Source: Cyanophora paradoxa CCMP329
Taxonomy: Eukaryota > Plantae > Glaucophyta
Assembly (NCBI GenBank): GCA_004431415.1
Contig: QPMI01000686.1
Span: 35,478 to 99,477 of the forward strand
Direction of reading: 5' to 3'
DNA length: 64,000 nt
The notes under the pieces were generated by a model. It was given only the letters and a program-made list of their open reading frames with translations, was not told where the DNA came from and searched no databases. The first letter of the stretch is position 1, and each line of letters begins with the position of its first letter. This document shows positions 44,402 to 59,165 of the stretch, one piece after another. Both the position numbers and the translations under genes were made by a program.

Positions 44402-45799
44402 CCTTGGCTGGAGGGGCCGGGCGGGGCTGAGAGGCCGGCGCGCAGCTGCACGCCGAGGAGGGCTCCCTCTGCCTCGGCACCGCGCTCGCTTCGTGCCGCC
44501 TACAGCTTCGCCCTCGCCGCCTCCCTCTAGCGCCCGACGACGCCGATCGCGATCCAGCCATCATCGCATTTGTCGTGTACGTAGTGTATAGCCGCCACTC
44601 GAGCTCGCCCGGCCCGGCCGCGGCGCTGTGCCGCTGCATGTGCAGCCGGCCGCCGGGCGCCGCACTGCGGCAGGCGCGCGCGGCCCGGCGATGGCAATGA
44701 CGTCGACGGGCATGAATTTCAGCTAGCGCTGCATGCGCAGACGCGTACGTCGACGCGTACGGTGCCAGTCGGATGACTCGGATCCCCTATATATATAGCT
44801 AGGCCTCATGATCATATGCATCACGGCAGCTGTGAGTCAATTGCAAGCTCATATGCATGATCATCGCGGCATCCCATATATATTATATTCCTAGTCCTGG
44901 AATATTCGCCAACGGCTCAATTTGTATATACCCCTTCATATGCCGCCTCGTCAAATCCGTTTCCCTGCGGCCACGACCGGGATTGCCGCCGGAACGAATT
45001 GGAGACAACCGGGAACGGCCTCCTCTACGCGCTCGAGCTCGCGCGAGCCCGTAGCTCGCCCGGCTGCCGAGAACGGAGACATACATCGTGCATATGCAAG
45101 TCCATGCATGTCGCCGGAGCGCGCCGCCGGGCACCCGAAAATGCTCGCGCATGCGTTTTTCAACTCCCGACCGCGCGCGAGGCCTTAACTCGCGCTGGCA
45201 TTCGAATTCCGGCCGCGTTCGAACCGCGGTTCTAAAAAACCGCGGGGGTATGCGCAACGGGGCCCAGCTGCTCGTAAAGCGCAGTCTGCAGCTGCAGCCT
45301 GCAGCGCACAGCAGACGCAGTCGCGAGGCAGCAGCACAGTCTTTTTGCCTTTCGGGGCCGTGCGCCGGTCGGGAGAGAGCGTCTTCAGGTGAATTCCTCG
45401 AGCTCTGCGCCCGCGGCTGACATCGCGCCCGCACCGCGGCTCGCAACATCGTTCATCTCCTCCCGATCTGCTTATTCACGCGCTGCGGTCTGCGCCGGTT
45501 CACGGACCGCGCAGGGCTTGAACACTCCCATCGCGCGCCTCTGGCTCGCTGGCCGGCCTGGATAGACGATCGGCTCCTTGAAGCATCAGAGGATGTACGC
45601 TATTGCTTGGATGGCTCTGCGCTGGCCGCCCTGACCGCGCTGGCCGCAGTGGGACGTCCGATTCAGGCGAACTGAAAAAGCTCGCCCTGCCTGGGGCTAT
45701 CAATGCCCCCCGGACGGCAAGTGCTCACATCGTGCATGGTGCGCTCGCCCCGCCCGGCAGGTTCACTTGAAGTCTCACGGGTTCCTTCACAGACGGCGG

Positions 45800-46480
45800 A
45801 CCTCGCTCTTTGGGCCAGGTGAGCCGGCGGCGCGGCCGAATGACTCTCGCGTCGATCTCTGAGATATTCACCCGCAGATGCCCTCCGTAGCGCGCGCTCG
45901 CAGCCCGCGGGGCGCCCAAGCGCATCGAGAGCTAGGGGCTCGTCAAGCGGGCCTCGCTCTTTGGGCCAGGTGAGCCGGCGGCGCGGCCGGACGGCTGTCG
46001 CAACTATCTCTGAGATATCTGCACGCAGACGCCCTCCGTAGCGCGCGCCCGCAGCCCGCGGGCGCCAAGCGCATCGAGAGCTAGGGGCTCGTCCGGAGGG
46101 CCTCGCTCTTTGGGCCAGGTGAGCCGGCGGCGCGGCCGGACGGCTCTCGCAACTATCTCTGAGATATCCGCACGCAGACGCCCTCCGTAGCGCGCGCCCG
46201 CAGCCCGCGGGGCGCCGAAGCGCATCGAGAGCTAGGGGCTCGTCAAGCGGGCCTCGCTCTTTGGGCCAGGTGAGCCGGCGGCGCGGCCGGGCGGCTCTCG
46301 CAACGGTCTCTGAGATATCCGCACGCAGACGCCCTCCGTGGCGCGCGCCCGCAGCCCGCGGGGCGCCGAAGCGCATCGAGAGCTAGGGGCTCGTCCGGCG
46401 GGCCTCGCTCTTTGGGCCAGGTGAGCCGGCGGCGCGGCCGGGCGGCTCTCGCAACTATCTCTGAGATGTCCGCCCGCAGA
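45800..46480. repeat. Tandem repeat, about 151-bp unit, about 4.5 copies
   Basis: CCTCGCTCTTTGGGCCAGGTGAGCCGG recurs at 45801, 45952, 46101, 46252 and 46403. Confidence 0.95.
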
Positions 46481-46980
46481 TGTCCGCGGGGCGCAGTCCG
46501 CGAGAGCTCGGGGCTTGTGCTCTCCAGGACTCAGGGACTTAGTGCAGGATCTGATCCCATTCCCCCTTCTTCCCCGTGAATTTGGATTTCTTCCCCTTCG
46601 TAATTTCTTGCTCATCGATTCGAAATGATACTCATGCTTTTTTTTCCATCAACTTGTTCCTGATGCCACATCCCCCCGGGTCCACACCCACCCCTCACGA
46701 GCCCCACCCCCTACGCCTCGGGAAAATCTGTGTCGAAGGCCCCACATGCTATGACAGGGCGTAGGGACTTTGAGAACCTGGATATATATACGTTTAAACG
46801 TTTACGTATACGTATACGTATACGTATGCGTACGTATACTACGGTAGCATTGCAATTGCACGCGCGGCACTTGAGGCTCAATCTCGCTCGCGGCTGCATG
46901 TACATTGCGCATGCGGCCGGCGCGGCGAGGCCGACGCATGCAGCGAAGCTGCAGCTGGATGTGGAATCAGGTCATATTGT

Positions 46981-47089
46981 TGTAGTGCGCCAAATAAAAT
47001 GGCGCGCCATCTTATTTTTATGGCGCACGCTTTTGAGCCATCGCAGAAAAAAAGGCGCCGGCCAGCGCAGCCGGAGCTTTGCGTTGGGG
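46981..47089 (+). repeat. Left terminal inverted repeat
   Basis: Reverse complement of 57018-57124 apart from a few small differences, mostly homopolymer length. Confidence 0.95.
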
Positions 47090-47237
47090 AGTACTGCTAG
47101 GCTAGCTGTCGCGATCGAAATCGCCTATCATTATAGCCTACCGCCGGGCTACCGGTATAGGACCGCACTGGCGGGAAGCGGTCGGGGAGCCGCGCGCGCG
47201 CACCGAGCCCGAAGGCGCGGCCCTAGGCACATCAGCA

Positions 47238-50200
47238 ATGAGGTGGTGGGAGCATCCAGATGTCAGAGACCTTCCCAACAAGTTCGAATGCAGGTGTCCA
47301 CCCGCAGAGAATCTGTCCGGGCTCTGCGGCAATAACTTCCTGTGCAAGACTCTGTTTCCTAACATTCGCATCGACATGCCCAGCAACGCAGCAGCGGCAT
47401 CGTCATCGCAATCGAGCAACCAACAGCAGTCAGCACCATCGAGCGGCCAGCAGGCGCCGTCCACCTCGAGCGGACAGGCGGCGAGTTCGAGCAGTAAGCC
47501 GCGTAATCGAAAGCGGCCAAATACTAGTGAACCGCCGCGGCCGCGCGGGCGCCCTCGGAAGCAGCCACCAGCACCTGCAGCTGTGGGCGCAGATGGCGCA
47601 GCAGCTTCAGAATCACAGCCAGCAGAGGCAGCGGCTTCGAGCTCGAGCTCGAGGCAGCAACAACAAAAGAAGGGCTCGGCCGCAGCAGCCGGCAAGCGCA
47701 TCGACACCACCGAATTTCGCCACCGAGTCCAGCGGATGTTCGCCGAATCCCGAGGCGCTGAACCGGTCCCAGCAGCATCAGTGCAGCGCGTAACTTTCGA
47801 AGAATATCGAGCCGCTATACAGCGTGTGAAGCCCGGAGCGGTGCTGCTATCTCGCGCCGACATCGAACACGTTAAGTACATCCTCGAAAACCCGGACGCG
47901 CCCGAGCCCAGCGGCAGCCCAGAGCATGTGAAGCGGGTGAAGAATTGGCGCGAGTTCATGAGGGGGAAGTACACGCTGCGCGAGGTTCCAGATCCGACAG
48001 ACAACCTGACAGCGGAGGAGCTCGCCATGCCCAACCCGCGGCCAAGGCGCAAGCTTCGGCTGGTGGTGGAGAAGCAGGTTGACAACCGCTTGAAGCGAGG
48101 AAATTCGGGCGACGCCCCCCCACTGGGCAGGGAGCTGGTGTGTGACGAGGACATTTTCATCTGCATCCAGGTGCGATCGCGGTACAACGCAATTCTCTGC
48201 GCACGCGCAACGCATCTTCAACGCAAGCGTTGGGTTGCTAGCGTTGGACATTCTCAACACATGCGTTGACCATGCGTTGAACAGAATACATTTTAATTTT
48301 TATGTCCACTGCATTGCACTGTTTGTGACGCGGTCATGATCGTGCGCAGCGCGAACACCTTGAGAGCGGGCACAAAGGTGGCACCGGTGTATACAACAAT
48401 GCGAAGCAAAGGTACGCGATTCCTCGCTACCTGGTCCGCATCTACGTCAAGATTTGGTGAGTTTTCTGTCCACCGACAAACCAATCGTGACTAAGACTCA
48501 CCTGCGGTCGTGGGGATGGGGCTGCAGTCCAGTCTGCAAGCTCAAGAACAAGAGGAGGCAGCCCGACGGGATCCTCCATCCAATCAAGGTGATTGGTTTC
48601 TGGGATCGGGCAATTGTCGACTTCTTTGAGATGCCCAAGGCATGGGGCCCCTGCCCCCGCATGGTGAGATGTTGTTATTGATGCGCCTGGCCGCGTGTTA
48701 AAATTTACCTGGGAGTTGCAGGAGTGGCTGCCGGGGTGGAAGTGGAATGAGAGCTCAGGCGAGCTCGAGAGGGTCTGGTACTGGGAGCAAGCAGTGCACG
48801 TGTGCCGGTACGAGAAGAAAATCCCGGATCCCGAATTTCCGGGCTGCTACAAGACGGTCTTTGTCACGGACGTCATTCCGCGATTCTGGGCATTTGTCCT
48901 GGCCATAAAGGTCAGTTTTCGGCACGGTCATGCGCAGATTTCTGCATCCGGTAACGAACAACGGCGAACGCAGGACCACTACACTCGTTTCCTCATCTTG
49001 GAGGCTTGCGAATCAAAGTGCGCAGGCGAAGTTGCTGATCGTCTTCGCGAGAAATTTGCCTACTTCGGCGCATGCACAATCCTGTCCTGCGACAACGGAT
49101 CGGAGTTCAAGAATGATGTGAAATCCCCCGTTATCTCTTGTAAACTTCAATATTAATTATGTTAACGGAGTATGGCAGATCATGAAGGTCCTTATGGCGG
49201 CCTACCCGAACTCGTCCATCGCCTACGGGAAACCGTACACTCCAGAGCACCAGGGCTCTGTGGAGCGCGCGAACAGGGACTCGAAGCCGACGCTCGAGGC
49301 TATTTGCTACGAACGCCGGAACCAGAATGCGGAGGACTGGGCGAACTGGGCCTAGCCATTCCCGATGTATTTAAAATCCTTTCCATACCCCATTTGAAAA
49401 TTCCAAGTGCACTGATCGATGCTGGATTCTCAGGCAATGGAGTCCCACAACAGCATGAAGTTCGCGAACGGGCACAAGATGACACCCATCGAGGCCATGA
49501 CCGGGCGCAGACCTTCACGAAGGCCTTTGGGAATTGAGCCACCGTCGGATCCGACAAGGCCGTACACCGAGAAGGACATTGAGGACCTCCTCGGAGTGCG
49601 CAACGGAATGTCTGCGCATCCCAACGCATGCGTTGGTAATTGTGTTGTCAGGTTGCAAACATGGAGGAAGTGAACAGAGTGTGCGATGACATGGCGAAGT
49701 ACGAAGAAGATATCGCCAACGCTCTTCTGCAGAGGCGGAGAGCCCGCTCTTGAAGGATATCCCGGTGTTCTACGTAGTAAGTGCCGTCAATTCATTGCAA
49801 ATTTTGTCGCACTCTCATCCAACGCATTCTCAACGCATGCGTTGGACAGATCGATCAGTTTGTGCGTGCATTCGGGAATGTCCAGGCATGCGCACGGCTT
49901 GCCGTGTACAGAGACCAGATGAAGGCGTGCGCGGAGAAGCAGGGAGCAGGTCCTGTTATCTACAGTATCGGGGATCGTGTGGCCGTCCTTGTCAAACAGC
50001 TCGGCATGCACGTCCTCCTACAAGCAAGGGTACCTGGGATCGTCACAGAAGTGGTGGACGTCCCGCATGGCCTCTACACGATCAGGACGATGGCGGGTTT
50101 CATTGACACTCCCATTCAGGGAGCACAATTGATCAACATGAACCTCGTGGGCGGTACGTGCAGGGTAGTCCCATTTGCACGAATGTTGCACACTCATCAA

Positions 50201-51708
50201 AAAACTGGTGCAGGTATGCAGACAATCTGGAAGACAATTGAGGAGAACCGTGCGAACAACATAATGAACGGCACCGTTCCTCTCATGACAGCATTCAAGA
50301 GCTTCTGTGGCCAGGCCCCCGGTCTCGACGTGGACCCGTGCAAGTGCAGGGATGGCTGCCTTCCAGAGAAATGCGGCTGTTTCACAAGCGGCCTGGTGTG
50401 CTGCTCGAGCTGCCAGTGCAGCAAGTACGGGTGCAAGAACAAGCGTGAGCGCATCTACCCGGAGACGGCCAGTGTCGGGGAGAAAATCATTCCGCGCCAG
50501 CGTGGCGCAACGGCAGAATCGATCGTCGCGACAATGCAACAGCAGATGGCCCTGTCGACGACAAGTACGGCCCCATCCCGTCTGTTGATGGGATACGACG
50601 GGTGCGTTTTTGTAGCAACGCAAAGCACACGTTTGCGTTCTTCAATTCAACGCTTGCGGTGCAGTTGCGTTGGACTTCCTCTTCTAATTTCCTTTTTCTC
50701 GCAGCTTCTGGCCCCTGGCATGCACACCACCAACAAGCCCCTGCAGGCATTCCTCCGTGCTGCAAACCTGCGCACACAGGTAACAAGGAGGCTCTCAAGC
50801 TGCGAATTCTAGCTTATCTCAAGAAAGAGGAGGAGGATGCCGCTCAGCGTGCAGCCCAAGCAGCCGCAGCACGTGCAGCCAAGCAGCCACAGCCCACGCT
50901 CCGGCCCCACCCGCCCCGTCTACTGCTGCGGCCCGCCTGCCCCATCTCCTGCTGCGGGCCCGCCCGGCCCGTCCCGCGCTCCTGCCCCGCCCGCCCCGTC
51001 TCCTGCTGCGGCCCGCCCGCCCCGTCTCCTGCTGCGACCCCGCCCGGCCCGTCCCGCGCTCCGGCCCCGCCCGCCCCGTCTCCTGCTGCGGCCCCGCCCG
51101 CCCCGTCTCCTGCTGCGGCCCCGCCCGGCCTGTCCCGCGCTCCGGCCCCGCCCGCCCGTCTCCTGCTGCGGCCCCGCCCGCCCGTCTCCTGCTGCGGCCC
51201 CGCCCGGCCCGGCCCGTGCTGCGGCTCCGCCCGGCCCACGCCCGCCACCTCTGCCGCACTATGCACCTGGGGTGGTGCTGCCCCCTGTTGGGTCAGCCCC
51301 AATTGCGAGGGGTCTTGGCCCAGTCCCAGGGGCGGTTCCCGTTATTGGTCCCCACTCCCTCTGGGCCGTCTTTCTCTTCTTCTACCCTGCCATCCTCTGG
51401 ATCCAGCTCTCCCATTCGTGGCCAGTTCGAGTTGGGCCCGCACCTCGGGACACACACGGGGTGCCTGTCCTCCCCAACTCCGGGCCAAGTTACACGCAGG
51501 CAGAGCTTGAAGCCGCCTTGGCAGCACCATGTTACCCACTAGCCCCTCAGTCTAGGCTAGCTATGTCCTCGAGCCCTGTGCGCCCAGTTATGCCCCGGCA
51601 CCCAGCATGGAGCAGCAGATGCAGCAGATGCAGCAGATGATGCAGCACTTTCAGATGATGATGCAGACATTCCAGCAGAATATGGCCAACACTAGGCATG
51701 GTGTATGA
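47238..51708 (+). CDS. Ginger/KRBA2-like integrase-type transposase (AT-hook, H2C2 zinc finger, DDE core, CXC domain, SAP-like motif, Pro- and Gln/Met-rich tail); a few frameshifts
   Basis: PRGRPRK; IQ-REHLESGHKGG...YVKIC-PVCK; AIVDFFEM (D1); DHYTRF; ILSCDNGSEF (D2); GKPYTPEHQGSVERANR (E); MTPIEAMTGR; YSIGDRVAV; CKCRDGCLPEKCGCFTSGLVCCSSCQCSKYGCKN. TGA at 51706-51708. Confidence 0.88.
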
Positions 51709-52043
51709 AGTGTTTGTCAGAAATTTGCTTGAAAGGGAACTGACAGAGATGCGAAAATTGAAAGGGAACTGAGAGAGGGAACCGGGTGTGCAACGGAAAC
51801 GCAACGCATGCGTTGGGAATGCGTTGTGTCCTGCCAGGCTGCATGCAGCGCGCGCTCGGCTGGGGCGTGTCTTATACATATATACTCTTCTTCTTCTTTA
51901 GGAATCATGTACTATAATTTATACTTTATTGCTACTACTACTATACTTTATTGATACTACATTCATTGTCATAGTACAATTTTAGATCTTGAACACGACT
52001 ATAGCTAGTCTACTTGTGTGCGTGCGTTTCAAGAACCCTGGCT

Positions 52044-52231
52044 GTAGTTCGCTTTAAGAACCAGACTAATGTGCTTCATGACTCATAATCGTAGTTCGAC
52101 ATTAGAACCGGACTACTAAGCTTCATGACTCATGATCGTAGTTCGACTTTAGAACCGGACTACTAAGCTTCATGACTCATGATCGTAGTTCAACTTTAGA
52201 ACCCGACTAGTTAGCCTCATGACTCATGATC
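52044..52231. repeat. Four tandem 47-bp repeats between the convergent 3' ends inside the transposon
   Basis: Unit GTAGTTCGACATTAGAACCGGACTACTAAGCTTCATGACTCATGATC starting at 52044, 52091, 52138 and 52185. Confidence 0.92.
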
Positions 52232-52585
52232 GTTGGACGCATGATTGTAGTACAAATCTGAGAACTCTAGAATACTACAAATTGCTTCAGAGCTTCTCGA
52301 GTACTTGTCTAGTACTTGTGACTACAGATCTAGTCACTGAGTTACCTACTAAACTCATCCTTCGAGTTCGAGCGGCCAAATCCTTTGAATTTCCATCCCA
52401 CTCGACTAAGCAGTATCCACTTCACTGTGAGCACGTCCAGCCTGCCCACACTTCAACTTTCATCCCATCAGTACCACAAGTACGACTTGTAAAGTAAGAC
52501 TTGTAAATTGTGCAGAGAACACAAGCTGAAGCAGTTGCACAATGGCTACTTTCTGCACATTAATCTACTTCTACTTCAACAGAAT

Positions 52586-55500
52586 CTACTTCTTGAGCAT
52601 GAAGATGTCCCACTTGTGCCACCAGTTGTCCTTGCCCTCCACTGTTCCCTCGTTGAAGTCCGATATTTCGCCACGCAGCGGCCGCGGGTGTGGCCGGTAC
52701 GAGATAGAACGGCGGAAGGTCCTGCGATCCTCCACCTTTCCTACAGTGACCGCGGGCCATTCCGAAGTGCAAAAGTCATCTCGCCCTCGGCGTCCGTCTC
52801 CTCGTGCTGCATCCAACACGTGAGCAGCGGAAACGCAACGCATGCATTGGAATTGCGTAGTTACCTGCAGGGCTAGGAAGAGTTCGTACTCGGCATCCCA
52901 ATCGAGCTCTACCTGAGCGTACTGCACGTAGTAAACCGTGGATGTGTCGAAGTGCAGGACGCGCCCGGGTGCCTGTCCGTATGCTGTCTTGGACTGGTCG
53001 AATGGCACGAGGATGGTGTGTTCTCTCTCCGTACTCCTCCTGCCGCGAACCACGAGACGCGTTCGTGGCTCGAGATCGAAATGCGGCGGCCATCGCAGCT
53101 TGAGAACTGTTTTCACGATCTGTTTCCGTCCGTTCCAGATGTGCGTTGCCACCTCATCTGCGAGGGCCTTCTTGGAAATGCGGCCCCCACCCAGGTGCCA
53201 CAAAATCGGGTGAGGCCTCAACGCGTGGTTCACATCTCTGCCAAGACGTGTAAGTAATAACGCAATGCCCACAAAATATGCCGTTGCACGCACACAACAC
53301 CGCCGCCGTCTTCCGGAGACGGCTGGACATACAGCTTTTTGTCCGTTCTGCATTTGAAACACGGCAACGCAATATCAACGTTAGCGCTGGAAAAGCGTTG
53401 TGTAAGCGTTGAAAAGTTATGCTCGCCTCAGAATGGGTCTCGAGAGTTGCGGGCGGGCATCCTCTGCGGCTCCTTCTGCGACGTTCAACCTGCAGACATT
53501 ATCTGAATATTTTGTGACGTGAATGGGGCATTGCATACCGCGTGGGAGTGCTGCAGGTTCGGACAGCGTCTAGAAATGTGTCATCGACGGCGACGGGGAC
53601 GACTTCACGCTTGCCCCGTTTCCTGCCACCGTCATCCTGTTTGACTGGCTGAAATATGTATGGCGTCATATATTGGACAACCTCGTCCCCCTGTTTAATG
53701 GCGGCCCCGATGATGATGGGGTCATCCCGCGGCCACTCAATGACCACAACGAGGGGCCTCCCCCGACGATGTCTCCGCTGCGAGACGGGGTTCGAGCTGG
53801 GCGTACTTGTGCGTGTTGCACAGCCTCCAGGGGTGCGACGTCACCCTGGTTGGTGATCCCATACCGCAACAACTTGCTCCGAGCCCGGAGGGAGGTCGTC
53901 GTTGGGCTTTGTGAAGCACAGATACGACGACTTCGCATCGTATGCACTTATGTGCTCTTGTTCGCGATGAAGTGCTGAGCACGACTGAGACTGAGAGGTT
54001 TCTCCGTTCTGATTTACAACAACGCTACATCAACGTATGTACAACGCAAGCGTTGAGTATGCGTTGCAATGCTATGCTCGCCTGAGAAAGGGTTTGGATG
54101 AAAGCTCCAGGATCGAGCCGCCGTCTGTAGAGTTCGAGCTGCACATGTATAATTACAGTCTGATTTATTACAGTACCGATTGTATAATAATTTGCGAGGA
54201 CTGCCCGTGCGCACCCGGTTTCCTGGTTTACGTAGGCCAACCGGCCCCGGGCGGGAGGGAGTATCTTGGGGGCGAGTGGACTCTCTCCGCCTGACTTGGC
54301 TTTTGCGCGCTCTGCCTTGCTGCGAAGCTGCCGAAAGCTGCTCTGCTTTCCAGGATTGAGAAGCTTGGGAAGGGGCGGCAGCTGTCGGGGATTTGGGATT
54401 ATTGGCTCCGCCGCCAGCTCATATGCAGCCTTCCTCTTCTTTCGGCTCTTCTCTGCAGGCGCCTCTGCCAGCTTCTCCGCTGCCACCGCCTTGTCCTTCT
54501 CCTTCAACTTCTTCTCGGCCGCCTTCTGCGCTGCGTGATTAGAACTCTTTCCTATGCCAGGCGCTCGCACAGAGTGACGCGAAAAACTGCACCCTCTCCT
54601 GTGCTGCCGCGGCAGCCTCTGCCTGCGCCTTCGTTTTCGCGGCCTCCTTCTCGGCTGCAGCCTTCTTTGCTGCCGCCGCCTTCTCCTTCTCCTTCGCTTT
54701 CTTCTCGGCCTCCTTCTGCGCTGCGTTATTAAAACTGTTCCCCAGGCCCGGAACGCTCGCAGAGAGTGCCGCGCAACACTGCACCTTTTCCTGTGCTGCT
54801 GCCTGCTCCGCCGTTTTTGCGGCCTGCTTTTCTGCTGCGGCCTTCTTCGCTGCCGCCGCCTTGCCCTTCTCCTTCGATTTCGCCTCGGCCTCCTTCTGTG
54901 CTGCGGTATTAAAACTCTGCACTATGCCCGGGACTGGCACAGATTGCGTTTTTAAGACTGCACCTTCTCTGTCATTGCTGCGGCCTTGGGCTTCTTCGCC
55001 TCCTTCTCCATCTCCTTCTCCTGCTTCTTGCGCTTCCCTGCTTTCTGCTTTTCCTGCTTCGCCTCCTGACCCTTCGTCTCTGCCTTGCGGTTGCGCTTCC
55101 TCGAGCTTGCCGCCTCTGCGTCCTCGTCCTCGTCCTCGCCCTCGTCCTCGCCCTCGTCCTCGTCCTCATTCCCGCTCTCGTTGTCGTCCTCGAGCTTGTC
55201 CTCTACGTCATCCTCCTCGTCGGACTCTGCGGGCACGGAATCAACGAAAATTGCGCTGTATCTTTGCAACGCAATCAACCAACGCAATACCAACGCTTGC
55301 GTTTTCGATGCGTTGTGCATGCGTTGTACACATTGCGCACCTTCGTCTGTCGGGGGGGCGCGGACGCGTGCCTTGCCCTTCTGCTCTGCCACTTTCCTTG
55401 CCGGCTCTGCAAGTGCAAAAGTGCGCGTGAGCCTTGTGCCAACACGGAGGGAAGTTGATTACGTCAACACTATTCATCGTATGTCAATCAACGTATGCGT

Positions 55501-56901
55501 TGAGAGGTGTTGAAATATGCGTTGGGATTGCGTTGGAACAGCGTCGCGTACCTTCGCACGAGTCGTGATGTTCGATTTCCTGCTTCTTCTTGCAATTGGC
55601 CTTCCTCTTCGCCCCGGTCGCCTTGTACCTGCGTGGTAAATTGTTTCCACCGGTCAGTTTCGTATGTGTTGCTCGAAATAATGGAACTCTTGCTCACTCT
55701 CCGCTGTCCACCTTGTCCTTGCCATCCATCCAGCCGGCTACGTTCTCCTCCATCGCCGTCAGCTTGTGAGTCCCTAGGATGAAGTCGGCGACATCCAGAA
55801 TGCCGGGTCGCGAGATGCCCTCAAGCTTGTAGTGGTCGTCCGGCACCTCCTGCTCCGCTTTCCTCATCCTTAGAATGCACAGTCTGTTCGGAGTGTACGC
55901 ATCAGGGCGTGGCATCGTTGCCCCATCTTCAACGCACGCACATGTTCTCAATGTTATGAAAATAGATCTCTTTCTTGCATCTCGTGAGGGATTGAAGGTG
56001 GCTGAGGTCCTTCTTGTCGAATGGGGTGAGCAGCGGCCGCAGTCTGCTCAGCGTGTCGTGCGTTTTGCGGGTGCCGCCCCGCACTTCTGCATCCGCGAGA
56101 GAGCGTGAGCTCGAGATATAAACTTAAATTCTAGCTCGATAACTGAAATGAAGGGACGGCACCTTCAGAAACAGCCAGGCTCGCGGGCATGTCTCCGGAG
56201 TGTACTCCCCCCCCGATCCCTCGATCGGCTCGTCCCACAGTAGCCGCACGACGTCCCGTGCCGTGTTGCAGTCCCCAGTGCCGCGCTTGCCATCCGTGTC
56301 CTCCTTCAGGTAGTTCGCGCCTGTCGCCGCCCTCTTCTTTGCTCGAGGTTCACCTGCAGAGGCGAGCGCAGCTCCGACGGATGTCTGGACCTGCAAGCGC
56401 AACACCTCCACGAGCGAACTCAGCTGCGCCGAGTCCGACGAAGTCGCCGCCTGAACCGGCTGCTGCGCCTTGCCGCGCTTCATGAGCTTCACAAGTTCGG
56501 GGTCGGCGTTGCTGTCGCCGTCCTCGTGCGCTGGCTGCATGTCCCGCCGCACGACGTAGAAGAAACATCCGGGACTGAGCTTCGGCAGCTTCCGAGACGC
56601 AGTCCTCAGATCGAGGGTGTCCGCCTCCGGATCGTAGAAGTACAGGTCCAGGCCCGCAGGTCCGACGGATTGCGTGAAGCGGAGCTGCCGCTCCGCATCC
56701 TTCATGAGCTCCGCAGGCCATCCCGTGCCTCCCTCGACCTCGATGGTCACCGTCGCTGCGTCACGGGCAAGGTGCACGCGCGGTCGGGCATCATGATCAG
56801 CGCGGCGCCCGGTGCGCGCCTTCGCATCACAGCTCAAGAGTATCGAACCTTTGGTCGTAGTAAGGCCCTTGCTTGGCCACTTTGCCCTTCTTGGGCGCCA
56901 T
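52586..56901 (-). CDS. Large multi-exon orphan accessory gene of the transposon (globular N- and C-terminal regions, acidic tract, three duplicated Lys/Ala/Glu-rich exons)
   Basis: ATG 56901 MAPKKGKVAKQGPYYDQ; exons VHLARDAATV...RAWLFLK, LCILRMRKAEQ, ESDEEDDVEDKLEDD, 3x SFNxAAQKEAE..KEK, VVIEWPRDDPIII, DVNHALRPHPILWHLGG...YELFLALQ, joined by GT/GC-AG introns. The 3' end is uncertain (52586 or about 52741) and this could be two genes. Confidence 0.65.
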
Positions 56902-57017
56902 GTGCGGACCGCCCCGCCCGCTGCCGCAGTGCTGTCTGCCGGCTGCTGCTGTGCGCACTACCTACTAGCCTAGTAGTATAGTACTATTGCATCATACGCT
57001 GCGAGTCGTAGTAACCC

Positions 57018-57124
57018 CCCCAACGCAAGCTCCGGCTGCGCTGGCCGGCGCATTTTTTTCTGCGATGGCTCAAAAGCGTGCGCCATAAAATAAGATGGCG
57101 CGCCATTTTATTTGGCGCACTACA
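57018..57124 (-). repeat. Right terminal inverted repeat
   Basis: Ends ...ATTTTATTTGGCGCACTACA at 57124. Confidence 0.95.
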
Positions 57125-57126
57125 GA

Positions 57127-59165
57127 TTCCACTGAGTCGAGCCGCTCGTACCATGTACCCCAGTCAGTAGTCTTGCTGTACCTCCGGGACCGCACCACGG
57201 CTCCCAATACAGCCCACCACCCTCGGGGCAATCTCGCGTGTAGCGCACGGGCTGGGAGCACAGCTGGCAGCCACAGCACAGCAGAGCGGGCCCAACAACA
57301 CCAATAATACCCTCGCCGGGACAGCCCTGCCCCGTCGACGGACGCTGCGGACGTCGATGCGCCGGTGGAGAGTCCGTGGATTCTGCATGGTGGAGAGTGC
57401 GCGCGATCGCTGGACTACGAAAAGGAGGGACGATCGGCACGGAGGCCGAATCTTCAAAAGCGGAGGGAGGAGAAGAAGATGGCGATCCCAACCGCGACCG
57501 CAGCGATGTGCTCGTCAGCAGCAGCACCGGGTGATGCCCGCGACCGGCCCTCGCTCGCGCGCTGGACCGCGTCGGACCGTCGGGTGATTCCCGTGCCGCC
57601 TGCAGCAGCCTTGGCAGCTGGGTGATTCCAGCGTAATCCGTGCGGCCTGATCGAGAGCTGGTGCTCTTTCCACGTCGATCAGCGCAATCGCGCATCGGAG
57701 GCCGGTGATTCCGGCATGACCTCGGCTTGCGTACCTCAGCGACCCAGCACGCCGCGCTCCGCGCGCATGAGCAAGGGCGCCAAAGGCGAGCGCTGTCTGC
57801 GAGTGCTGCGCGTCCCGGGAGTCCGCCCAACCAGACCGGCGCGCACTTGGCCGCGATCGCCCGGACCTGCGCATACGGACTGGAGGCGGCGATCAAGCTA
57901 CATCTCCACGCTGAAGATACGCTCTCTCTCGTTCTTTCCGTCGCATTAGCAGCTCGCCCCCCCGAGAGTCGCTCTTAGAAGGGAACCATCTATGCGTGTC
58001 CCGCGACTCGGCTACCCATGCCAGTCGCCTTGAGAGTCTATGAGCCTTGAGAGTCTATCTTGCTTCCGACTGAGAGTCTGTCGCAACCGACTGGGAGTCC
58101 GGCCCCGCGCCGTTCAGTCGTGACCCTTATCGCTGTCCGATGGCCCACGGATGATGTATCCGATGCGGCGTTGCCCCTTCCAATCCCGGATGATGTATCC
58201 GATGAGTCGCATAGCCTGCCATGGCCCGTTGGAGCCCCGAAGAGAGTTGCCTCGCCGGTCCCGAGCTGCTAGCCTCCCGCCTGAGTGATGGCCCTGCGGA
58301 AGGATGGCTCTGACCGATCCTCTTGCTGTCTTGCTCAGATGCGGTCACTCGCAATCGAGGCTTCAAGATGACCAGACTTACCTTGCGTGCCGCGCGTCAC
58401 ACCCGTCTTTACGATGGCCGTGATTGCCCGAGCCGCCCTCCCGTCGCTGACGTGCTGTACCCCGACGTCGATGTCCCCGGGCCCTGCCCCCTTGCATCCT
58501 TTGCCGTTCTCCATTCCTCTTTTGAGTCTTCCATTTCCTTTCCCGTCGGGTGGTGGTTTTCTGCCTGGTCTCTTGCTGTGGGATGCAAGTGCCGGTGCCT
58601 CTCTGTATGGCCCCCAGGGTCCCATCAGTGGCTTGGCCTCTTCAGACCTCACGCCTCGCTGCTGCCCTGGATAGCGGGTTCTTTCTCATCCCTGTCCTTT
58701 CTCGTGCAGTTTCGTAGTGGCTTCATCCTTACCAGTGAGGGAGATCCCCCCGGGTAGCTTTCACCTTACCAGTGAGGGAGATCCCTGTACCCCTCGTTCC
58801 CTTGGCGTACCCTCGATCTTTCGGACGGCCCTTGAGAGTTGTACCCTTCTGGCCCTTGGTTCATTGCCAGGCCTAGGCGTTTTCCGTCCCGGCCCCGACC
58901 ACGTGGGCGTAGTCGTTGCCGTTCCGATGTGGACCACGTGGACGTGGTCTTACCAGTGAGGGAGATGTTGCCAGCCTGGTTTCCACTGAGTCGAGCCGCT
59001 CGTACCATGTACCCCAGTCAGTAGTCTTGCTGTACCTCCGGGACCGCACCACGGCTCCCAATACAGCCCACCACCCTCGGGGCAATCTCGCGTGTAGCGC
59101 ACGGGCTGGGAGCACAGCTGGGCAGCCACAGCACAGCAGAGCGGGCCAACACACCAATAATAATA
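57127..59165 (+). mobile_element. Non-autonomous or degenerate LTR-like element with about 185-bp direct repeats; left repeat cut by the Ginger TIR
   Basis: 57127-57309 is nearly identical to 58981-59165. The right copy is preceded by purine-rich AGTGAGGGAGA then TGTTG (PPT + TG-like start). No recognisable gag/pol or PBS. Confidence 0.6.

Follow-up and report, generated by a model that had tools for sequence, protein, structure and literature searches.

In this work we have analysed a stretch of 64,000 nucleotides from the glaucophyte Cyanophora paradoxa CCMP329 (contig QPMI01000686.1, positions 35,478 to 99,477 of the forward strand), which is called the window below and in which positions are counted from the first letter. 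The window contains an element of 10.1 kb (46981-57124) that is bounded by terminal inverted repeats (TIRs) and carries two convergent genes, an integrase-type transposase on the plus strand and, on the minus strand, a second large gene which we call ORF2 (open reading frame 2). The first-pass annotation of this DNA had noticed a large, intron-rich gene inside the right TIR that converges on the transposase, and this is what we find: ORF2 (52586-56901) consists of 16 exons (3166 nt) and 15 introns of 46-145 nt, its ATG at 56901 lies 113 nt from the inner edge of the right TIR and its stop codon is at 52586-52588. The gene had also been taken to be native to the element. At the level of the transposon family, the description of ORF2 as a native orphan gene is well supported by the sequence comparisons: no host paralogue was found, the GC content resembles that of the element and a short motif word is concentrated in the introns.

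The exon map was obtained by placing public gene models of sister copies on the window by means of exact peptide words and TBLASTN, after which the splice junctions were refined; searches with ORF2 used either single window exons or public sister models as proxies. Thirteen introns are of the GT-AG type and two (I11 and I13) of the GC-AG type, and minus-strand open frames of 237 and 258 codons lie within the gene. The GC content at codon positions 1, 2 and 3 is 0.64, 0.44 and 0.74, which is a normal coding signature (GC3 > GC1 > GC2). A lower, element-like GC content and motif-bearing introns had been claimed for ORF2, and both are borne out: exon GC is 0.605 and intron GC 0.504, the element as a whole having 0.52-0.62 versus 0.66-0.82 in most flanking 2-kb host bins (a few of which have 0.58-0.63), where the comparison is with these whole bins. 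There was no depletion of CpG, for which observed/expected ratios of 1.0 (element) and 1.1 (host) were obtained. In ORF2, 17 copies of the word CAACGC/GCGTTG fall in 1140 nt of intron and 3 in 3176 nt of exon; the transposase region contains the word at equal density, and beyond the element it is found about once per 2 kb.

Parts of the gene are present in more than one version. Introns I11 (54081-54009) and I13 (53426-53348) are paralogous, with 73% identity, share the GC donor AG|GCGAGCATA and hold four and three CAACGC/GCGTTG words, respectively; it appears that introns with the motif were duplicated, or copied, as whole units. The sequence coding for a K/A/E-rich helix is an intron-plus-exon unit of about 180-190 nt that is present three times between 54963 and 54400 (minus strand). 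The exons of the three units are 81-87% and their introns 76-84% identical, and all have GTGCAG...CGCAG splice sites and phase-0 borders. We read the K/A/E region as the product of tripling one intron-plus-exon unit with its splice sites kept, that is, of evolution in place, for which the motif word common to the ORF2 introns and the rest of the element also speaks.

The same protein, of up to 1125 amino acids (aa), is encoded by gene models on at least eight contigs (tig00000219, 769, 939, 1128, 1376, 21127, 21612 and 21720) of the EukProt set EP00741 Cyanophora paradoxa, and when the first large open reading frame served as query, a word-based protein search retrieved an independent Cyanophora gene model at E = 4.6e-124. 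The longer models include P0006 (1125 aa), P0013 (907 aa), P0014 and P0022, and intact sister copies encode about 1050-1125 aa. Model P0012 (tig00021720_g23197) is 100% identical to the window and is very likely the annotation of the window locus itself; a one-base shift near 52755 creates a premature stop in the window, and the public model therefore ends early (...RNGPRSL). Two subfamilies can be distinguished, A with the window copy, P0013 and P0014, and B with P0006, P0005, P0002 and P0015. In several sister models the ORF2 exons are joined to sequence from elsewhere in the element, namely the antisense strand of a transposase exon (about 50359-50200) in P0001 and P0003, that of the P-rich repeat of the transposase gene (about 51260-50930) in P0002 and P0022, and left-end sequence (47263-47204) in P0006. 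The ORF2 model g7195 on contig tig00001128 has a transposase fragment (g7192) as a neighbour three genes away. We take the joined models to be traces of copies with internal deletions and of a convergent gene order that recurs elsewhere in the genome, and many derivatives have part of ORF2 deleted. As far as the sequences show, many copies of the family, deletion derivatives among them, carry ORF2, always within element sequence. A separate case outside the window is P0015 (tig00021612_g22862), in which ORF2 exon 1 (65 aa, subfamily B) is followed by unrelated sequence; this may be a solo end or short derivative that lends its first exon to a neighbouring gene, or an annotation chimera.

While the gene itself is real, the first reading has to be corrected with respect to the window copy, whose frame, in comparison with the sister models, is broken six times, so that the assembled sequence cannot be translated from one end to the other. 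The breaks lie at the junction of exons 1 and 2 and near 56079, 53966, 53844, 53758 and 52755. The first of these is common to the window, P0013 and P0014 and is a mark of subfamily A; the other five are private to the window and are length differences of 1-2 nt, mostly in short runs of G or C. The assembly was built from PacBio RSII reads by means of Canu and Quiver, and correction with Illumina reads has little power in repeats, to which reads can map at more than one place (PMC6704402). Wherever the frames agree, the window protein is 99-100% identical to the other subfamily-A models. Because many one-nucleotide length changes are accompanied by almost no substitutions, residual consensus errors fit the five private breaks better than mutation does, and they may be such errors; the window copy is either defective, through very recent decay, or poorly polished. 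Could ORF2 then be a relic, once functional, with all present copies drifting neutrally and the public models being nothing other than the predictor's best paths through pseudogenes? The six frame problems of the window copy would agree with this, as would the models P0013 and P0014, which have local frame problems that differ from those of the window. However, proteins that remain 99-100% identical within subfamily A in spite of several one-nucleotide length changes at short G/C runs are a better fit to consensus errors, and the substitutions between the subfamilies are unevenly spread, which makes general decay unlikely in our view. Between the window and P0006, as representatives of subfamilies A and B, the amino-acid differences amount to 1.6-4.4% in exons 2, 12, 15 and 16 and to 22-24% in exons 5 and 6, an uneven distribution across exons (chi-square p = 4e-5), and the putative folded exons differ by 3.1% versus 8.4% for the linker exons (Fisher p = 7e-4). 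Three indels within ORF2 exons preserve the frame. Together with the GC content at codon positions, the uneven divergence and the frame-keeping indels are indirect signs of some constraint on ORF2.

We also asked where the ORF2 protein has relatives. A HMMER search with P0006 against 1.84e9 representatives, one per 50% cluster of about 15 billion proteins, gave eight hits. Seven are C. paradoxa copies, and the eighth, a low-complexity match at E = 4e-4 to the acidic/basic tract of a shrimp nuclear FKBP, is a match of composition only. A close host paralogue, which the first-pass annotation had named as evidence against a native gene, was not found; the significant hits, and all detectable relatives, are Cyanophora element copies, with the proviso that the 50% clustering would conceal any host gene with more than 50% identity. 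Searches of clusters at the 90% level covered lengths of about 130-450 aa. No real match was obtained for ORF2 in PHROGs and NCBIfam scans, the best scores in feature searches of the ESM Atlas, 0.81 for the N-terminal and 0.76 for the C-terminal region, did not rise above noise, and similarity between ORF2 and the transposase was not found. The ORF2 protein is accordingly one for which we detect no relative beyond this transposon family. The ENA members of the 90% cluster of P0001 were considered as possible transcripts and rejected, since they are five open reading frames of 32-47 aa beside SoxD genes on bacterial metagenome contigs (loci L001-L008), a clustering artefact.

These searches bear on another explanation, in which ORF2 is a passenger, an old host gene or gene mosaic that was captured by the element, plays no role in transposition and has a donor which is lost or has diverged beyond recognition. 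We regard this as rather unlikely. The HMMER search of the 50% cluster representatives brought up no host paralogue in the Cyanophora proteome or elsewhere; the ORF2 introns share their motif word with the transposase introns, the GC content is like that of the element and unlike that of the host, and divergence is lower in the folded regions than in the linkers. What speaks for the possibility is that no transposition-related domain was found in ORF2, that the young subfamily A has spread with a frame-broken first exon and that many derivatives have lost part of the gene.

The element which carries ORF2 resembles the Ginger transposons. Ginger1 and Ginger2/Tdd are cut-and-paste elements bounded by TIRs, with TGTNR termini and a transposase resembling the Gypsy integrase (H2C2 and DDE), and the elements described are 2.6-7 kb long with one transposase tabulated, which in Ginger1 has a C-terminal OTU or Ulp1 domain (Bao, Kapitonov and Jurka 2010, PMC2836005). 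The target-site duplications (TSDs) of Ginger elements are 4 bp (CCGG or CCGT) in Ginger1, 4 bp in Ginger2 and 5 bp in TDD-4. The TIRs of the present element are 111-112 nt long, within the Ginger range of about 40-270 bp (PMC2836005), and 97% identical, with the outermost 38 nt identical, where zero matches are expected by chance; both ends have TGTAG, in agreement with the Ginger 5' termini TGTNR. The translated transposase shows the motifs C..C...K, W..D, DNGSEF and QGSVERAN, and its Pfam matches to Integrase_H2C2 (E = 7.7e-4), rve (E = 1.9e-3) and rve_3 (E = 0.042) are all below the gathering scores. From the visible motifs and these sub-threshold matches, the label "integrase-type, Ginger-like" is therefore a fair one for the element. 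It differs from described Ginger elements in its length of 10.1 kb, in its second large gene and in having SAP and CXC-like matches instead of OTU or Ulp1: Pfam gave no match to an OTU or Ulp1 C-terminal domain on the transposase, which has sub-threshold CXC-like and SAP matches instead. These two are candidate DNA-binding modules and are unusual for an integrase-type transposase. A further difference is that no TSD flanks the window copy (TTGT at 46977-46980 versus GATT at 57125-57128) despite the near-identical TIRs; this result concerns a single copy and says nothing for the whole family. The coordinates of the features are given in Table 1.

Table 1. Features of the element and of its two genes in the window (positions on the window; exon numbering follows ORF2).
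Feature	Position	Strand	Description
Left TIR	46981..47092	+	starts TGTAG
Right TIR	57014..57124	-	plus strand finishes CTACA
Transposase gene	47376..51640	+	multi-exon, integrase type; 3' limit approximate
Transposase zinc-finger C..C	48526-48552	+	
Transposase DDE residues	near 48598-48636, 49079-49114, 49248-49277	+	
Transposase CXC/tesmin-like Cys-rich stretch	50333-50443	+	PF03638 E = 0.0033, profile positions 3-37 of 38, below gathering score
Transposase SAP motif	50782-50826	+	PF02037 E = 1e-4 on sister model P0025
Transposase P-rich tandem repeats	50893-51237	+	period ~80 nt, 3' part
ORF2 exon 1	56849..56901	-	MAPKKGKVAKQGPYYDQ...; 53 nt in subfamily A, out of frame with exon 2; 58 codons in subfamily B models
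ORF2 exon 2	56163..56755	-	conserved N-terminal region of ~197 aa (TVTIEVEGG...AWLFLK); 96% identical between subfamilies; no family match
ORF2 exon 3	55942..56086	-	KCGGG...FHNIEN; one-base shift in G run near 56079, window copy only
ORF2 exon 4	55698..55883	-	LCILRMRK...VDSGE
ORF2 exon 5	55552..55628	-	YKATGAKRKANCKKKQEIEHHDSCE; fast-evolving linker
ORF2 exon 6	55341..55406	-	EPARKVAEQKGKARVRAPPTDE; flanking introns hold 3 and 5 motif words
ORF2 exon 7	54964..55226	-	D/E tract, then RKRNRK and GKRKKQEK
ORF2 exon 8	54785..54895	-	K/A/E repeat unit 1
ORF2 exon 9	54593..54715	-	K/A/E repeat unit 2
ORF2 exon 10	54215..54525	-	K/A/E repeat unit 3, then SRKKRKAA and P-rich linker
ORF2 exon 11	54082..54138	-	SNSTDGGSILELSSKPFL; next intron GC-AG, 4 motif words
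ORF2 exon 12	53539..54008	-	conserved C-terminal region begins; frame changes near 53966, 53844, 53758 in window copy
ORF2 exon 13	53427..53489	-	LNVAEGAAEDARPQLSRPIL; next intron GC-AG, 3 motif words
ORF2 exon 14	53294..53347	-	TDKKLYVQPSPEDGGGV
ORF2 exon 15	52865..53237	-	DVNHALRPHP...ELFLALQ; most conserved exon, 98% identical between subfamilies
ORF2 exon 16 and stop codon	52586..52806	-	one-base shift in C run near 52755, window copy only
MAPKKGK	56901-56881	-	basic N-terminus
PRAKKRAA	56348-56325	-	basic cluster
D/E tract	55227-55108	-	40 residues
RKRNRK	55101-55084	-	basic cluster
GKRKKQEK	55038-55015	-	basic cluster
SRKKRKAA	54447-54424	-	basic cluster

Two tandem repeats were seen near the genes. 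In the spacer that separates the two convergent genes there is a 96-nt tandem duplication (within 52044-52233), and to the left of the element, at 45663-46615 on the minus strand, overlapping open reading frames reiterate the peptide …RRLTWPKERGPLDEPLALDAL… within a GC-rich tandem repeat.

The ORF2 protein begins with a short basic N-terminus, followed by a conserved region of about 200 aa, a helical region with Cys and His and the D/E tract; after this come basic clusters resembling nuclear localization signals, a K/A/E helix of about 100 residues and a conserved C-terminal region of about 400 aa. The basic clusters MAPKKGK, RKRNRK and RKKRK and the acidic tract reported by the first-pass annotation could all be located in ORF2, whereas its description of the repeats as histone-H1-like is not supported. 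Linker histone H1 combines a globular winged-helix domain with a disordered K/A/P tail; ORF2 gave no linker-histone (winged-helix) match, and its K/A/E repeats are rich in Glu and are predicted by AlphaFold as one helix (residues 500-597; predicted local distance difference test, pLDDT, >80). The combination of a long D/E tract with neighbouring lysine-rich clusters is reminiscent of nucleoplasmin-like FKBP39/46 and of the nucleolin class, but this is a likeness of composition only, as ORF2 lacks an FKBP, nucleoplasmin or RRM domain. In residues 41-128 the order of secondary-structure elements resembles a beta-grasp, a low-confidence hint from the model on which we base no claim.

Is it possible that ORF2 reads the motif words? 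In this explanation, which takes up the proposal of the first-pass annotation that ORF2 encodes a chromatin-acting accessory factor and is the likeliest partner of the motifs, the protein would dock sequence-specifically on phased arrays of CAACGC/GCGTTG, both those within introns and those at the inner TIR ends. Protein and arrays do occur together in the same element and the composition of the protein is of a nuclear type, but neither Pfam, a PDB search nor AlphaFold detected a DNA- or chromatin-binding fold in ORF2, and the CXC/tesmin-like stretch of the transposase (a sub-threshold, full-length match, E = 0.0033) and its SAP motif (E = 1e-4) are at least equally good candidates for this task. 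We therefore consider a role of ORF2 as the motif reader very unlikely. A broader proposal, that a large helper restricted to this lineage evolved within a Ginger-like element, with its two unassigned domains reading the intronic CAACGC arrays and its acidic/basic scaffold acting on chromatin, strikes us as quite unlikely too; if it were true, the element would mark its whole body, and not just its ends, for its own machinery.

The explanation which we favour, and which we hold to be probable but by no means secure, is that ORF2 is the second gene of a TIR-bounded, integrase-type ("Ginger-like") transposon family of about 10.1 kb and encodes a nuclear helper that acts in trans. Its product would be a nuclear protein supplied in trans to aid the element, in a role like that of mudrB for MuDR, the Myb-like ORF2 for PIF/Harbinger or TnpA for En/Spm, and it may connect the transposase to element DNA or to chromatin. 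The closest analogy, and our best reading by comparison with known systems, is mudrB. MuDR of maize, a member of the Mutator/MULE superfamily, encodes the mudrA transposase and the mudrB helper of about 200 aa. As in MuDR, the two genes of the present element are convergent, each begins just inside a TIR and there are many internal-deletion derivatives; as with mudrB, the second gene is confined to one lineage, lacks any recognisable domain and seems dispensable in cis. Unlike in MuDR, the transposase belongs to an unrelated superfamily (integrase-type DDE), ORF2 has 16 exons and more than 1000 codons, and sequence similarity is absent. The helpers of PIF/Harbinger and En/Spm provide further analogies. 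The PIF/Harbinger ORF2 (Myb/SANT-like) and the En/Spm TnpA bind repeated subterminal motifs and recruit or import the transposase. With these systems our element shares a gene for a putative accessory protein beside the transposase, for which we envisage the same role, and a second gene within the TIRs in many copies. It differs in that its motif arrays lie in introns across the element and not just in subterminal positions, and in that no Myb/SANT or other DNA-binding domain was detected by Pfam on the window exons or P0006.

Several observations speak against the favoured explanation. The Pfam scan of seven exon-level open reading frames and P0006 gave matches of composition only and no function-bearing domain, and the PDB sequence search had 0 hits. 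AlphaFold2, run on the whole of P0006 and on the N-terminal 353 aa of P0005, gave no fold (mean pLDDT 33 in both models), the K/A/E helix being the sole confident part. Every copy's model has local frame problems, and near-identical subfamily-A copies have multiplied although exon 1 is out of frame with exon 2; a young subfamily that spreads in this state argues that ORF2 is not needed in cis. The transposase already has SAP and CXC-like modules, so that the data do not require a DNA-binding helper. Finally, the ORF2 gene identifiers were not found in the supplements of PMC6704402 and bioRxiv 674762.

For the annotation of C. paradoxa, the results mean that about a dozen "hypothetical proteins" in its proteome are fragments of ORF2. 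For the transposons themselves, Ginger elements have been described as single-gene elements and are cut-and-paste relatives of long terminal repeat retrotransposons. The family found here adds to them a large orphan gene owned by the element, motif arrays borne by introns and a transposase with SAP and CXC-like modules. Because it brings these together, it offers a tractable case for studying how transposons acquire helpers and how new proteins originate in mobile DNA.

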